DNA from: Chlorokybus atmophyticus
Lineage: Eukaryota; Plantae; Mesostigma and Chlorokybus algae
Length of the DNA stretch: 64,000 nt
Direction of reading: 5' to 3'
Assembly: GCA_009103225.1 (NCBI GenBank)
Contig: RHPI01003129.1
Span: 51,942 to 115,941, forward strand
Under the pieces are notes generated by a model that ran no database searches, was not told the origin of the DNA, and saw only the letters and a list, made by a program, of their open reading frames with translations. Positions 6,163-11,358 of the stretch are shown piece by piece (positions within the stretch are counted from its first letter, which is position 1; every line of letters begins with the position of its first letter). Position numbers and translations under genes: made by a program.

Positions 6163-7962
6163 TCAGTTGACGCCTTCAATATAGGCTCCAGAGCCATCCA
6201 GGACAAAGATAATAGCGTCAATGATCAATCTGCACACCGCACACCTCGCAATGGTAGCAGGGCCAGATGTCGTCTGCAGGTACTGGTGCGCGCACTCCGC
6301 ATGGTAGAGGTGCATGCAGCTCACGCGGTGGGTCTGAAGATTAAGGAAGGCAATGACACGGGCCGCGCTCTCATGCTGCTCAAAGAGCTTGTCGTGACAG
6401 ATTGGGCACACTTCGTCCAGACACGCCTTCTGCACAGACTCGGAGCTATAGAGGTCTGACGGGTGCCCCTGCATGCGCGGTGGTCATTTAGGGGTGCTTC
6501 TGTTGCACTGGAAGCATGGCGACGCTAGTGCAACAGATCAGGGTGACATACATGATGTGAATGCTGTTAACAGGCGCCTACCTCAAGTGGATGCTGCATT
6601 ACAGCTAAGCACTGCAGCCGCAGGGCGCCAGGGTTGCCACGGGCTTGTGGCAGTCCGACAAATTGTTGTCCACCGTCGGCATCATCATCGTCTCCAGCGG
6701 CCAGCAACAGCTGCTCAGTAGCATCGTAAAGAGCTTGCCGGCGGCGCCAGTTCTCCCACACCTGATCAAATTGTTAGCCTCTGCAGGAGGATGTCTGTCT
6801 AGCTCACTGCATGCACGAAAAGTTGATAAGCCATAGCTTCTACCTGCAGCGCTGCACGCGAGTACTTGTACACAGCCCAAGGAGTAGCAATGGCCGCCAA
6901 GGCAGGTGCCGCAGCGGGCATGAGGCAGCAGGCGCCGAATGCGATGGAGTACGAGACAGCACCGATGACCGCAGCATGGCTCGAGGCGCAGACAGTGTTG
7001 AAAACGGCGTCACCGGCAGACACCTGGCTTAGAGCAACGCCGTGCGCCTGGTCCAGTGCCACAATGCCACCAACCACGGCCGCGCAGCGCACGGCGGCGC
7101 CTTTCGCAAAGCCCAAGTTGCCATGATGGTGCTGTAAGTGACTTGGCCCGCCGTGCACGTGATCGCCGGTGGTGCCTGCAAGATGGTTATCGCCGAGTGT
7201 TGAGAGGCATGCATGGGGTACAGCAATCTGGTGTTAAGTGAGGCATAGCAGTTGCGGTGCTGGCAAGCGCTGACGCTCACCATGATGGTCGGCGTCAATG
7301 ACAGCATCAGTATGGCTTGTGCTGTCGTGAGTCGCAGACGGATCATGGACAGGATGGCTGCTGTCGTGCTGGTTGTCGGCGAAAGCGTGATGCGCATCGT
7401 CTCGCGTTGCATCATGATGACCAATGCTTTGGTGTGCACCTAGCAGTATGCCAGGGGGTGATGATGTGCGTGGCATCAACCGCAACAGTAGCAATGCACC
7501 AGAGCGACGGCTATTGCCATCTGCAGTGATTGGACGGACTGGTTGAGACTTGCAATTGACGGGCGACAGCACAAGCACGTGGGACGGGGGGGGGGGGGGG
7601 GGGGGGNGGGGGGGGGGGGGGGGGGGGGGGGGGGGGGGGGGGGGGGGGGGGGGGGGGGGGGCACTAACCTGCTAGTGTGCCGGAGGACTCAGGAGGGTTG
7701 CTGAGCATGAGGAAGTCCTGCGCCGCTGAAACGTCCACGTATAGCGGGTCCTGAGCGGCCAGAATGCAGAAGTAGACACCGCGGTCTGCATGCGCAATAG
7801 CCGGACAACCGGTGTCAGCAGCACGATGTTGCAAGTGTCAATGGCGCAACCAGATCACATCATGCAAGGAAAGAAGAGAGCACATGCTCATGATAGGCGC
7901 AACGTGCACGCACCCAGCCACCAGACGCCGCTGAGGGCCCCCAGCGCTGCGACCACCGACAT
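6163..7962 (-). CDS. His/Asp-rich, hydrophobic-module, RING-H2 protein (paralogue A, 6 exons)
   Basis: Exons 7962-7914, 7785-7669, 7439-7281, 7175-6844, 6761-6582 and 6468-6163 join with GT-AG sites and consistent phase: MSVVAALGALSGVWWL-DRGVYFCILAAQD...GHHDATRDDAHH...QVSAGDAVFNT...CPIC...CMHLYHAEC...CAVC. Same architecture as the gene at 9036-11358. Confidence 0.75.
7586..7661. repeat. poly-G tract containing one N, in intron 2 of paralogue A
   Basis: Direct reading; length unreliable because of the N at 7607. Confidence 0.9.
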
Positions 7963-9035
7963 GGCTGCTGTCGGCTAGTCGCAAGGGCAAGGAACGCGCC
8001 CGCCAGGCTGAGAATGCAGGGCGACAAGGAGTGCAACCAATGCGCGCAGCAGAGTGCTTCCTCCACACTCCTTTCTCCCTTCTCGCCGCCACTCACCATC
8101 GTATAGGCCTGTGAACTCTGCGCACGACGAAGTCCACGGAAGGTCCCAAAGCAGGCCAATTCCCGCACATGGGTCCACACTCGGGTCCGCAGTCACCCGA
8201 CTCTAAAGAAAGCCCTCCTTACAGGTCCCGCAAATGCAGCTGCTGCGTGGTAGCGGCTACCTGATGCCCGGTAAAGGCGGTACGCTATGCCCTATCAGCT
8301 CAACCAAGCAGCGCATGTCCCAGGACCGGATGCCCCTCGCCAGCATGGCGACCTACCATGGCATGATTGGCAAAGTCCCTCTGCACTGGGCGATACGGAA
8401 GCTGGCACCTTGTCAGAGCGAAGGGGGGGAAGCGCCCTCCTCAAAAGGGAGTACGGCAACACGTGTCTGGTGTGGATTGGGACGCTTAGCGACATGCCCC
8501 TAAAGGGGCGCTTGACGTGTCGCGCTACGGGCGATGCGAGAATCAGTCAGGCCCCCGTGTAGGAGTGATACCTGCAGCAACGGACGGTGCGATCAATGCG
8601 ATACACGTATTCGCCCACTCCCCCAGACGTGCGTCCGATTATATGCAACAAAGTCAGACAACAATGTCAGAGCAGCGGCTGGCTAAGCTGGCATGAATTG
8701 CCTACGTGTGACCTAGGACGTCAAGACTTATAAGCACAGAACACTTGGTGTTCAAGTGTTGTTTGTGGCGGCTTGCTGTCGGTGTTCAGTCTCCACCGCA
8801 TGAGTATCAGCCTGCCTGCTACGTTGCGGCTGGTGCATTGGTGGTAAGCGGAGGCCCAAGTGTGGGAAATCCCGTGCGTCCTGTGAGGTGAGCGCTGCGG
8901 CACCAGTGGTCCAACAATCTATGCCAGTGTGGGGTGGGAAGGGTGTGCATTCAGTTGTTGCCTCTGCATCTAGCACGCTGACGTTCTGTTGTCTGCCGCG
9001 TGTCAGCTGCTGCAACTGCCTGTCGGCCTCAGGCG

Positions 9036-11358
9036 ATGCCAACTGTGAGGAGAGTCCTGCGTGTGGTAGGTGGAACTTGCCAACGCCTCGGTAAGAGCTC
9101 TCTCTCTCTCTCTCTCTCTCTCTCTCTCTCTCTCTCTCTCTCTCTCTCTCTCTCTCTCTCTCTCTCTCTCTCTCTCTCTCTCTCTCTCTCTCTCTCTCTC
9201 TCTCTCTCTCTCTCTCTCTCTCTCTCTCTCTCTCTCTCTCTCTCTCTCTCTCTCTCTCTCTCTCTCTCTCTCTCTCTCTCTCTCTCTCTCTCTCTCTCTC
9301 TCTCTCTCTCTCTCTCTCTCTCTCTCTCTCTCTCTCTCTCTCTCTCTCTCTCTCTCTCTCTCTCTCTCTCTCTCTCTCTCTCTCTCTCTCTCTCTCTCTC
9401 TCTCTCTCTCTCTCTCTCTCTCTCTCTCTCTCTCTCTCTCTCTCTCTCTCTCTCTCTCTCTCTCTCTCTCTCTCTCTCTCTCNTGCCGTAGTGTTCTGGT
9501 GGCTGTGCTGACTGCGCTTGTTGGGTTAATATTGCCTTGGTTGCAGACAACGGGGTCTCTGCGCTGCTCCGGGCACACCGGGACTGCACCTTCTGGACTA
9601 CCGCCGGTGTCGAGTACTATGTTGCGCACCACGGTTCGTATGCATGGTTTGTATACACGCTGGTGAGCGCGTGTGTTGCGATACTGACTGAGTGCCCATC
9701 ACGACAGGCTACAACCATATGCCTTCCCTGAACCATGATCACGATGCCCACCAGCTTGGCGGTGGGCATCATGATGATACCCACCACGATCACGGTCACC
9801 TGTTGCATGATGACGCCCACCATGTGGATGGCCATGATGGCCATGACGGCAACACTCACCACCATGACGTTGGCCATCATGACAATGCCAATCATGATCA
9901 CGGTCACCTGTTGCACGATGACGCCCACCATGTGGATGGCCATGATGGCCACGTGCACGACGTTGGCACTCACCACGATCACGACTTTGGCCACCATGAC
10001 AATGCCCACCACGACCATGGTCACCTGGTGCACGACGCCCACCACGTGGATGGCCATTACGATGGCGCTCATGCTGATCACGGTCCTCACCACGGCCCAT
10101 CTGGTAAGAATTAGACTTTAGTCATTAAAGTACCAGCTGCGTGGTGATGTGCAAGCGCCCTCGCGCACGCCACTGAGCCGTGTGTTGCTGCGCAGCATGC
10201 GCAGTTTCCATGCTGGGACAGGCTGGACTGCGCGGAGCGCTGTATCATAGCGTGTTCAAAGGCGCTGACCAACTGCACGCCTACCGCTATGGAGAGGTTC
10301 GGTCACTCGCTTGTATCTGGTGGAATGTTGTATGCCATCCAGCTTCATGACCGAGCAACCAACCTGCAGGTGACAGCGGGTCAGGCTGTTTTGTCCACAG
10401 CTGGTGCTGCTGTCAGGGGAGCGGCGTACACGGCGGCTACTGCCTGCACCGCATTGGGTGTGTGCACCCTTTTTCCCATTGTTGCGGCTCTCTTGGCTGC
10501 TGCAGGCGGATCCTTAGCTGCGATTAAGATCGCTGTGGGAGCTTGGCGATTGCACGACAGCATGTCCGCTCGCAAAGTTCGACATGCTCTTAGGCAACAC
10601 GCAGCGGGTCGTCAACTCCCTGGCGAAGGAGTCATGGTATGCCACTAGTGTCTCTTGACAGTGCATGATGTCCTATGTACGTATCACCATCGGTGCTTCA
10701 TGTGCCAGCTGCGTTGGTAACCAAGCTACTCAGTCAACTGCATGCTCTCTCACTCGCTGATACGGATGCATAAGGCCCGCACAAGGACACAGCGAACTCT
10801 CACACTCTTGCAGGCCGCAGGTGCAGACGACAAGCTGAAGGGCAAGGAGAAATCCAAAGACCATGAGAAGAGGAAAGGGAAAGATAAAACCGGTACCAGC
10901 GCAGCGTCAGGGACTGATTTTGACGACAGTACCTGGGATTCATCGTATGACAGAGTCTTCATGTTTTTGGAAGACTGCCACCTGATCAAACAGGTAACCC
11001 AGGCCAGCTAGCGCGTGTGGTCATCGCATCCGCCGTGTGCTGCTCTTTACTCACACAGGGTCTGTCTGTGCAGGGCCAGTTTGACAACTCCTCTCTTCAT
11101 GAGTCGCTGAGAGGAGCAGGTGAAGAGGCTGACAGCTGTCCCATCTGCAGTGAAGATATCACGTCCGAGTCGTCCGAGCCGGTTGTTGTCTTCGTGAACG
11201 TGGTGACAGGCTTGTGCGGGCACTGCTACCACGCAGCATGTGCTGAGTTGGTCTTCATCGATATGCTGGAGAATCCTCGCAGGTTGCCGAACGGGCCTGA
11301 GTGCTGTGTCTGCCGCGAGCCAATCTTTGAGCTTGCCGTCTTGCCGGGATTGGCATAG
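9036..11358 (+). CDS. His/Asp-rich, hydrophobic-module, RING-H2 protein (paralogue B, 7 exons)
   Basis: Exons 9036-9090, 9547-9633, 9708-10103, 10205-10296, 10370-10636, 10814-10993 and ~11074-11358 join in phase at GT-AG sites. RING-H2: CPIC...CGHCYHAAC...CCVC. Exon 3 is His/Asp/Gly repeats. The start codon is less certain. Confidence 0.75.
9098..9482. repeat. (CT)n microsatellite in intron 1 of paralogue B
   Basis: Lies between donor G|GTAAGA (9091) and acceptor TTGCAG| (9546); ends at an N. Confidence 0.95.

Follow-up and report, generated by a model that had tools for sequence, protein, structure and literature searches.

A head-to-head pair of spliced genes

The window analysed here is a stretch of 64,000 nucleotides from Chlorokybus atmophyticus (assembly GCA_009103225.1, contig RHPI01003129.1), and all positions below are counted from its first letter. 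Gene models on this sequence place two GT-AG-spliced genes head-to-head, gene A on the minus strand and gene B on the plus strand, diverging from a common spacer of 1,073 bp between the two ATGs (7963-9035; 59% GC). The initial annotation had described two spliced genes facing away from a ~1.07-kb spacer, and every element that it listed was found where it had been placed. No dispersed repeat within the window was found for the spacer, and no inverted repeat between A and B remains at the DNA level. The spacer may act as a promoter for both genes, which would then be co-regulated.

Gene A consists of six exons (380 codons plus stop), and all its introns are GT..AG. Exon 1 (7914-7962) starts with the ATG at 7962, five codons downstream of an in-frame TAG, and encodes a hydrophobic N-terminus in 16 codons plus one nucleotide. 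Exon 2 (7669-7785) opens with the residues D-R-G-V, is in phase 1 at both ends, and is followed by an intron that contains a 76-nt poly-G/C run with one N (7586-7661). Exon 3 (7281-7439), where 12 of 52 residues are His and 10 are Asp, encodes a His/Asp-rich tract whose His-rich end extends into exon 4 (6844-7175), where it gives way to an Ala/Gly-rich hydrophobic module (~6868-7110). Exon 5 (6582-6761) is a 180-nt linker exon with an Arg-rich start and an acidic middle, and exon 6 (6163-6468) encodes a RING-H2 finger, whose ligands fall within 6232-6408, and runs through a hydrophobic C-terminal tail to the stop codon. Gene A is already present, without a name, in the public Chlorokybus proteome (jgi/Chlat1/4258, hereafter P0001). 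All five introns of this independent model agree with ours, including an identical exon 1 junction. However, P0001 lacks a 15-nt, GT..AG-bounded segment (6230-6244, minus strand) that encodes the final Cys-x-x-Cys of the RING and the next Arg. The predicted fold of full-length P0001 is uninformative (pLDDT 40).

Gene B has an intact frame over six to seven exons, with 456-462 codons depending on the model. As initially modelled, it comprises exons 9036-9090, 9547-9633, 9708-10103, 10196-10296, 10370-10636, 10814-10993 and 11074-11358, for 456 codons plus stop, and every intron is GT..AG. The first exon begins with the first ATG past a stop at 8979 and is Arg-rich, not hydrophobic; the 456-nt intron behind it is mainly (CT)n, most of it being occupied by a (CT)192 microsatellite (9098-9482). 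The second exon opens with D-N-G-V and is in phase 1 at both ends, while the third, where 46 of 131 residues are His and 26 are Asp, encodes an extreme His/Asp-rich tract made up of a 108-nt repeat present 2.8 times (9749-10057). Of the last two exons, the 180-nt one encodes a Lys/Asp-rich linker and the final one a RING-H2 finger, whose ligands fall within 11137-11313; a short hydrophobic tail leads from there to the stop codon.

Concerning the middle of gene B, two splice models compete. Similarity to A reaches 19 residues upstream of 10370, inside the fourth intron of the initial model (10297-10369), so that a single exon 10251-10636, replacing 10196-10296 and 10370-10636, fits the structure of A better. 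This exon has its hydrophobic helices at ~10370-10546; pairing of its acceptor AG (10249-10250) with the donor at 10103 would give six exons with intron phases 1,1,1,0,0, exactly those of A. Based on this comparison, we slightly prefer the single exon over the two-exon version. The frame and GT..AG introns of the initial splice model hold; the region 10196-10369 is ambiguous.

The RING-H2 finger

All eight zinc ligands of a C3H2C3 pattern are present in both last exons, as detected by a regular expression (C-x2-C-x(9-39)-C-x(1-3)-H-x(2-3)-H-x2-C-x(4-48)-C-x2-C). In A the ligands are arranged as C-x2-C-x26-C-x-H-x2-H-x2-C-x16-C-x2-C, and B follows the same pattern with spacers of 22 and 20. Matches to Pfam zf-RING_2 reach 23.9 bits for A (E=5e-5) and 21.8 bits for B (E=2e-4), both under the 27.3 cut-off, and indeed every RING family match in our Pfam scans scores under the gathering thresholds. 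A sequence-profile search of the PDB retrieved the RING E3 6f98 (E=1.6e-4) and Hrd1 (E=0.015). An AF2 model of the RING displays a beta-hairpin followed by a helix, at a mean pLDDT of only 59.6. The structures that it matches best are almost all RINGs, though at modest scores (Foldseek, HRD1 finger as top match, E=0.036), and it compares with APC11 at Z 5.1 and an rmsd of 2.3-2.7 A over 59 residues. Together with the ligand pattern and the weak sequence matches in Pfam and the PDB, this RING-like predicted fold supports the assignment of the C-terminal domains of A and B to the RING-H2 type, in agreement with the initial annotation.

Both fingers have an Ile after Cys1, an aromatic or hydrophobic residue where RINGs usually have Trp, and an Arg directly after Cys8 (the 'linchpin'). 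The roles of the Ile after Cys1 and of the Arg after the last Cys are known from RING E3s generally. Judging solely from these residues being at the right positions, the RINGs of A and B may have ligase activity.

Two old and divergent paralogues

A and B have in common, in their models, a phase-1 first intron (L|D-R-G-V in A, L|D-N-G-V in B), a penultimate exon of exactly 180 nt, and a last exon that begins with Gly, all of which had been pointed out initially; with the alternative model of B, the phases of all five introns are identical. The claim that the middle blocks and the RINGs align is also borne out. The middle block, Ala/Gly-rich and hydrophobic, has 13/36 identical residues (E=0.002) and, with the 19 residues upstream of 10370 included, 21/55 (E=5e-5); the RING exons have 23/67 (E=5e-4). 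For middle block and RING exons, none of 2000 composition-preserving shuffles was as good (z ~9 and ~13). Exon 2, the His/Asp exons and the 180-nt exons gave no A/B alignment past common composition, and the N-terminus of B is unlike that of A.

It could be argued that A and B are unrelated RING genes that are neighbours by chance, their similarity reflecting a generic RING consensus and an Ala-rich composition. The pairwise E-values are in fact modest (5e-4 and 5e-5), and against the A+B RING profile an unrelated ankyrin-RING protein (P0002) reaches 35.9 bits, near the 32 bits between the RINGs of A and B (tblastn). We nevertheless hold this to be extremely improbable: module order, five intron phases, the 180-nt exon and the Gly-first last exon would all have to coincide in two genes adjacent in mirror orientation, whose hydrophobic blocks moreover align better than 2000 out of 2000 composition-preserving shuffles. 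Collinear modules, intron phases, the 180-nt exon and two alignable blocks rather indicate that A and B are old, very divergent paralogues lying head-to-head, as had been proposed.

Gene B still has its eight zinc ligands and an intact frame although only ~30-35% of alignable residues match between the two genes, which argues for long-term purifying selection. This bears on whether A may be the only working gene of the two, B being silent, recently inactivated or mis-modelled (wrong first exon or other middle splice), and a pair under one promoter being an annotation illusion. No public protein matched gene B, and its RING exon is absent from 1.84 billion representative proteins, indicating that public annotation does not call B, at least with its RING. 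Moreover, its middle region has two rival splice models, its first exon is joined over an intron made mostly of (CT)n, and its N-terminus does not resemble that of A. However, the frame is open through six to seven exons with introns that are all GT..AG, the residues that follow Cys1 (Ile) and Cys8 (Arg) have been kept along with the ligands despite deep divergence, and the motif and phase at the exon 1/2 junction agree with those of A. A copy dead since such an old duplication would have accumulated stops or frameshifts. A non-functional B appears unlikely to us, if still deserving some weight.

A putative membrane anchor and a His/Asp-rich tract

Kyte-Doolittle hydropathy over 19 residues peaks at 1.66 and 1.95 in A and at 2.18 in B, and clusters of Arg and Lys lie just C-terminal of the hydrophobic block in both. 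This confirms the hydrophobic module of the initial annotation, with values of 1.7-2.2 and Arg/Lys-rich C-terminal flanks. In A, the main hydrophobic block is central (~residues 130-215 of 380). The helices are Ala-rich and moderately hydrophobic, and the first one of A contains Lys and Arg. Insertion into a membrane, and the topology that would follow, are predictions made for A and B purely from hydropathy. The His/Asp tracts of the two proteins have their composition in common and nothing more; they may play a role related to metal or pH.

Alternatively, A and B might be RING-H2 ligases but not membrane proteins. The Ala/Gly-rich block would then be soluble, a helical or low-complexity region for self-association, while the His/Asp tract would be a fast-evolving spacer without sensing function or act, for example, in speckle or condensate targeting. 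Consistently with this, the hydropathy peaks are moderate, with many Ala, Gly, Ser and Thr residues, helix 1 of A includes charged residues, B has no signal-like N-terminus, no Pfam match to any transmembrane family was found, and the His/Asp tracts do not align past composition, that of B being a recent tandem expansion. On the other hand, an uncharged stretch of ~36-42 residues has been kept between the paralogues as one of only two alignable parts, and in both proteins it is directly followed by Arg/Lys clusters, as would suit a stop-transfer flank. We consider a soluble pair quite unlikely.

Taken together, we find it reasonably probable that A and B are two real nuclear Chlorokybus genes that arose by an old inverted tandem duplication, each coding for a lineage-restricted, membrane-anchored RING-H2 ubiquitin ligase (predicted).

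Predicted layout and possible function

In such ligases, a short leader, hydrophobic in A and Arg-rich in B, would be followed by an intrinsically disordered His/Asp-rich tract, moderate in A and extreme in B through expansion of the 108-nt tandem repeat. The Ala/Gly-rich hydrophobic block, which has a Pro at its centre and small-xxx-small spacing, would anchor the protein in the membrane, by one long span or by a helical hairpin, and likely also offer a surface for helix-helix association. According to the positive-inside rule, the Arg/Lys-rich juxtamembrane flank would place all C-terminal parts in the cytosol, namely a variable linker of roughly 60 residues encoded by the 180-nt exon, and the C-terminal RING-H2, which would recruit a ubiquitin-charged E2.

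The hydrophobic tails behind the RINGs are reminiscent of MDM2, IAP and RNF4, whose C-terminal RINGs dimerise. One may even imagine A and B as a membrane E3 of its own, a dedicated homodimer or heterodimer whose chains are held together by small-xxx-small helices and post-RING tails, and whose His/Asp tracts directly take up Zn, Ni, Cu or Fe and act as a switch for the activity or stability of the ligase. Such an enzyme would have arisen in the Chlorokybus lineage and would sense metals independently of hemerythrin, a speculative scenario to which we give very little credence. The His/Asp tract of B is unusually extreme and directly testable for metal binding: if it is a metal switch, the pair would represent a new kind of metal-sensing ligase, and if it is not, one more fast-evolving TM-RING pair.

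New N-terminal modules on membrane RING-H2 ligases show how substrate or signal specificity arises, and A and B provide a clean case of a lineage-restricted ("orphan") E3 architecture (predicted) in one of the earliest-branching streptophyte algae. Public protein sets hold A without the last zinc-ligand pair of its RING and miss B, or at least its RING exon.

Relatives and known systems

A profile of the RING exons run against 1.84 billion proteins retrieved only gene A itself and the borderline ankyrin-RING protein P0002. Word searches and Pfam gave nothing for the other modules, Pfam scans of all exons and of P0001 detected no domain but the RING, and no relatives in other organisms were found in large protein libraries. 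In these searches, the statement that no described family has this architecture is upheld.

BTS/HRZ proteins are soluble iron sensors with folded hemerythrin domains and CHY/RING. They would resemble A and B in the idea, proposed initially, of a metal-binding module coupled to a RING. However, our Pfam scans detected no hemerythrin or CHY domain in A and B, which have only a low-complexity His/Asp tract.

Small membrane proteins of the MamC/glycine-zipper type resemble A and B in their Ala/Gly-rich helical block with small-xxx-small spacing. In a protein-language-model search (Atlas), MamC and Gly-zipper_Omp clusters score ~0.90, with a recognition value under the reliability line. No match to Pfam PF26373 (MamC) or to Gly-zipper families was obtained even at E<=10, and word searches found no small stand-alone relatives. 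Given the lack of a Pfam match and the sub-threshold recognition, we reject homology and treat the likeness as compositional.

ATLs, a family of plant RING-H2 E3 ligases, have N-terminal transmembrane helices, a GLD motif upstream of the RING, a Pro adjoining the third Cys, and intronless genes (PMC5764321). A and B share with them a (putative) hydrophobic anchor and a C3H2C3 RING-H2 in a plant-lineage protein, expected to be a membrane-tethered E3 that recruits an E2. In contrast to ATLs, their anchor is central, a GLD motif is absent from their exon translations, Cys3 is preceded by V-S in A and by G-L in B rather than by a Pro, and the genes have five introns (A) or five to six (B); we reject ATL membership on these grounds. 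Their ligand spacers (26/16 and 22/20) and the position of the RING at the extreme C-terminus also differ.

In sequence and structure, the solved RINGs nearest to those of A and B are 6f98 and the finger of the ERAD ligase Hrd1/SYVN1. As in A and B, the first Cys pair of these RINGs is separated from C-x-H by a long insert, and they come from membrane-embedded E3s. Hrd1 itself has a multi-spanning, channel-like N-terminal domain and a long C-terminal tail. PDB profile matches are weak and restricted to the RING (Hrd1 residues 336-391), and there was no Pfam match outside it, arguing against assignment to the Hrd1 family.

In the plant lineage, membrane-tethered RING-H2 ligases form an extensive class that is put to much use. 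PA-TM-RING proteins (plant RMR, animal RNF13/GRAIL/Goliath) consist of a non-cytosolic N-terminal domain, a membrane span and a cytosolic RING-H2, and A and B would have the same overall order of parts. However, Pfam scans of every exon and of P0001 show no protease-associated (PA) domain, and no other domain either, ahead of the putative anchor, so we do not assign A and B to this family; a disordered His/Asp tract stands in place of the PA domain, and B has no evident signal peptide. In our reading, A and B would belong to the common class of TM-RING proteins.

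Gene structure and splice models

We read the region 5800-11700 on both strands, rebuilt the models of the two head-to-head genes base by base and then checked them by script. The minus-strand gene, A, has exons at 7962-7914, 7785-7669, 7439-7281, 7175-6844, 6761-6582 and 6468-6163, giving a coding length of 1,143 nt (380 codons plus stop). Gene B, on the plus strand, was initially annotated with exons at 9036-9090, 9547-9633, 9708-10103, 10196-10296, 10370-10636, 10814-10993 and 11074-11358, for a total of 1,371 nt (456 codons plus stop). All introns of both genes have GT..AG borders, each start codon is the first in-frame ATG past a stop, and the spacer between the two ATGs occupies 7963-9035. 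The two genes share a phase-1 intron 1 (L|D-R-G-V in A, L|D-N-G-V in B), a penultimate exon of exactly 180 nt, and a last exon opening with Gly. The initial annotation had described both genes in these terms and proved accurate on rechecking, with the exception of one splice in B that may need to be corrected. The joined spliced models served for checks of frame, length, composition and hydropathy.

The proposed correction emerges from the comparison with gene A. In a tblastn search of the window, exon 4 of A aligns to 10313-10477, a match that starts inside the intron assigned to B at 10297-10369. Translated in frame with the next exon, this stretch lengthens the A/B alignment to 21/55 identical residues (E=5e-5), and the raw score of the hydrophobic block rises from 76 to 92 with the upstream extension. 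The 101-nt exon proposed at 10196-10296 shows no similarity to A (score 27; mean of the shuffles 23). The phase-1 donor at 10103 is matched by an AG acceptor at 10249-10250, which would yield a single exon at 10251-10636; the resulting model has 462 codons in six exons, with phases 1,1,1,0,0 exactly as in A. However, this acceptor (..TCATAG) is weaker than the two used in the seven-exon model (..GCGCAG and ..CTGCAG), which counts against the alternative. On balance, the sequence comparison leads us to lean modestly towards the six-exon model of B. The His-rich and RING exons of B share one reading frame under either splice model.

For gene A, we found independent support in a public protein. 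We ran a profile of the RING exons of both genes over 1.84 billion representative proteins, and it returned a 375-residue Chlorokybus model, P0001 (E=4e-43; EukProt EP00898 Chlorokybus atmophyticus P003619, alias jgi/Chlat1/4258/Chrsp279S04225). It is identical to gene A residue for residue save for five residues, and all five exon junctions coincide, which supports the splice model of A. The five residues absent from P0001 correspond to 15 nt of the window, 6230-6244 on the minus strand, which begin with GT, end in AG and encode the final Cys-x-x-Cys pair of the RING together with the Arg that follows. The genomic sequence of A reads through this stretch in frame, and the alignment of the two RING exons reveals the homologous C-x-x-C-R in B. 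Since B retains this motif, we take the uninterrupted reading of A as right and P0001 as lacking part of its RING, a gap that may represent either a mini-intron call or an assembly difference.

The only other match of this profile was P0002 (E=6.6e-4). This ankyrin-RING protein of 316 residues comes from an AT-rich organism and is unrelated. The RING of B was not returned from the 1.84 billion representative proteins, though it would be expected to score near that of A, indicating that the last exon of B is in no public predicted protein.

Paralogy of the two genes

In exon-level BLASTP comparisons, two blocks align between the genes: the hydrophobic block (13/36 identical, E=0.002) and the RING exon (23/67 identical, E=5e-4). 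Both also scored above all of 2000 composition-preserving shuffles made for each exon pair (z of ~9 and ~13, respectively). The 180-nt exons and exon 2 gave no BLASTP match between A and B, and their similarity, like that of the His/Asp exons, did not rise above chance in the 2000 shuffles. When P0001 was aligned with the separate exons of B, the B fragments were scattered. Taken together with the module order, intron phases, 180-nt exon and mirror adjacency, this weak sequence signal is by far best read as paralogy.

We also considered whether an inverted duplication is visible in the DNA itself and dismissed this, as the only matches present were short ones, due to chance or to His codons. 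The loss of all DNA-level similarity indicates that the duplication is old. The old inverted duplication put forward in the initial annotation is thus upheld by the aligned blocks, the common phases, the 180-nt exon and the mirror adjacency.

Domain architecture

Both genes encode a complete set of eight RING ligands, in agreement with the RING-H2 domain originally assigned to them. Pfam RING families match A and B with scores under the cut-offs, and the closest solved RINGs by sequence are those of the RING E3 6f98 (E=1.6e-4) and Hrd1 (E=0.015). An AF2 model of the RING (pLDDT 59.6) displays a beta-hairpin and helix core, and almost all of its structural neighbours are RINGs, including the HRD1 finger (Foldseek E=0.036) and APC11 (Z 5.1, rmsd 2.3-2.7 A over 59 residues), although these matches are modest. 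Three features of active RING E3s are present in A and B and would fit an active ligase: Cys1 is followed by Ile, the Trp position is taken by a hydrophobic or aromatic side chain, and Cys8 is followed by Arg (the 'linchpin'). In both proteins the RING lies at the extreme C-terminus and is followed by a short hydrophobic tail, an arrangement that recalls dimerising RINGs.

The hydrophobic module also withstood examination, and we read it as a putative membrane anchor. Over 19 residues its Kyte-Doolittle score peaks at 1.66 and 1.95 in gene A and at 2.18 in gene B. The conserved core of the module consists of ~36-42 uncharged residues, with Ala, Gly, Ser and Thr abundant, a Pro at the centre and small side chains spaced i, i+4. 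The module may form either one long span or a hairpin. A cluster of Arg and Lys follows the core in both proteins, which by the positive-inside rule would place the C-terminal half in the cytosol. The N-terminus of A is hydrophobic and could be a signal or anchor sequence, and that of B is Arg-rich. The 180-nt exon codes for a charged linker whose sequence is not conserved between A and B. The AF2 model of full-length P0001 has a pLDDT of 40, too low to be informative.

The His/Asp tract is most developed in B, where 46 of the 131 residues of exon 3 are His and 26 are Asp; a 108-nt repeat (81% matches), present in 2.8 copies, makes up the tract. This repeat structure implies that the tract expanded after the duplication that gave rise to A and B. 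The tract of A is milder (12 His and 10 Asp among the 52 residues of exon 3) and runs on into exon 4. That these proteins form a self-contained E3 dimer switched by metal binding to the His/Asp tract appears to us quite improbable. Metal responsiveness, a bidirectional promoter and expression of the pair are retained as hypotheses; a search for RNA sequencing runs over 9490-11400 listed none.

Genomic surroundings

The pair lies in unique sequence flanked by transposable elements and very long microsatellites. We rejected the possibility that the locus belongs to a transposon or a dispersed repeat: within the window, 5500-12500 is single-copy throughout, bar the internal 108-nt repeat, and tblastn with all exons of A and B found no further copies there. 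Both genes have a microsatellite within an early intron, namely poly-G/C in intron 2 of A and (CT)192 in intron 1 of B (9098-9482). Other long pure dinucleotide microsatellites include (TC)1123 over 2.2 kb at 30854-33099, (CT)291 at 4869-5451 and (GA)n of ~880 bp at 44793-45670; together with several single-N positions, such long microsatellites account for the strong composition skews of the window.

The transposable elements include an intact Ty3/gypsy chromovirus pol ORF of 921 residues at 33-2798 (plus strand), with RT, RNase H, integrase, SH3 and a C-terminal chromodomain, and a Ty1/copia element at 16731-20609 (minus strand) with two long open frames, one for gag/protease/integrase (627 aa) and one for RVT_2 (532 aa). 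An ORF with a DDE_1 transposase domain at 51203-52060 (minus strand; E=5.5e-14) represents a DNA-transposon remnant. Two adjoining ankyrin-repeat ORFs downstream of B, at 14694-15881 (minus strand), are probably exons of one gene. An ORF at 35748-36380 (plus strand) has a weak match to Rif1_N, under the cut-off (E=1.4e-4), and may belong to a larger gene over 35.7-38.7 kb as one of its exons. Finally, 53519-53809 holds 4.3 copies of a tandem repeat with a period of 68/135 nt, whose unit contains the internal palindrome CAAGTTG..CAACTTG.

Relatives and comparison with known RING-H2 families

Queries derived from the window were single exons, and full-length gene A was searched via P0001 only. 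Word searches with full-length P0001 and with its residues 118-245, which cover the hydrophobic block, each returned P0001 itself only, and a search with the hydrophobic exons of A and B, aligned, turned up no free-standing relative in the range of 60-190 residues. Pfam matched nothing outside the RING in the exons or in P0001. A protein-language-model search with the whole protein gave nothing; with the hydrophobic exon it gave weak leads, to MamC and glycine-zipper clusters at 0.90, with recognition sub-threshold. Homology to MamC or glycine-zipper proteins failed the Pfam test, and we take the likeness as compositional.

Our literature search found no description of a His-rich transmembrane RING-H2 family or of this Chlorokybus gene. 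Together with the lack of relatives in protein libraries and the Pfam blank outside the RING, this bears out the earlier view that the architecture is undescribed. The ATL family is characterized by N-terminal helices, a GLD motif, a Pro beside Cys3 and intronless genes (PMC5764321). In contrast, A and B have neither such N-terminal helices nor the GLD motif or the Cys3-adjacent Pro, and both contain introns. Membrane-bound RING-H2 ligases whose N-terminal modules vary are very common in the plant lineage, and the pair therefore represents a new lineage-restricted variant of these rather than a new kind of system.
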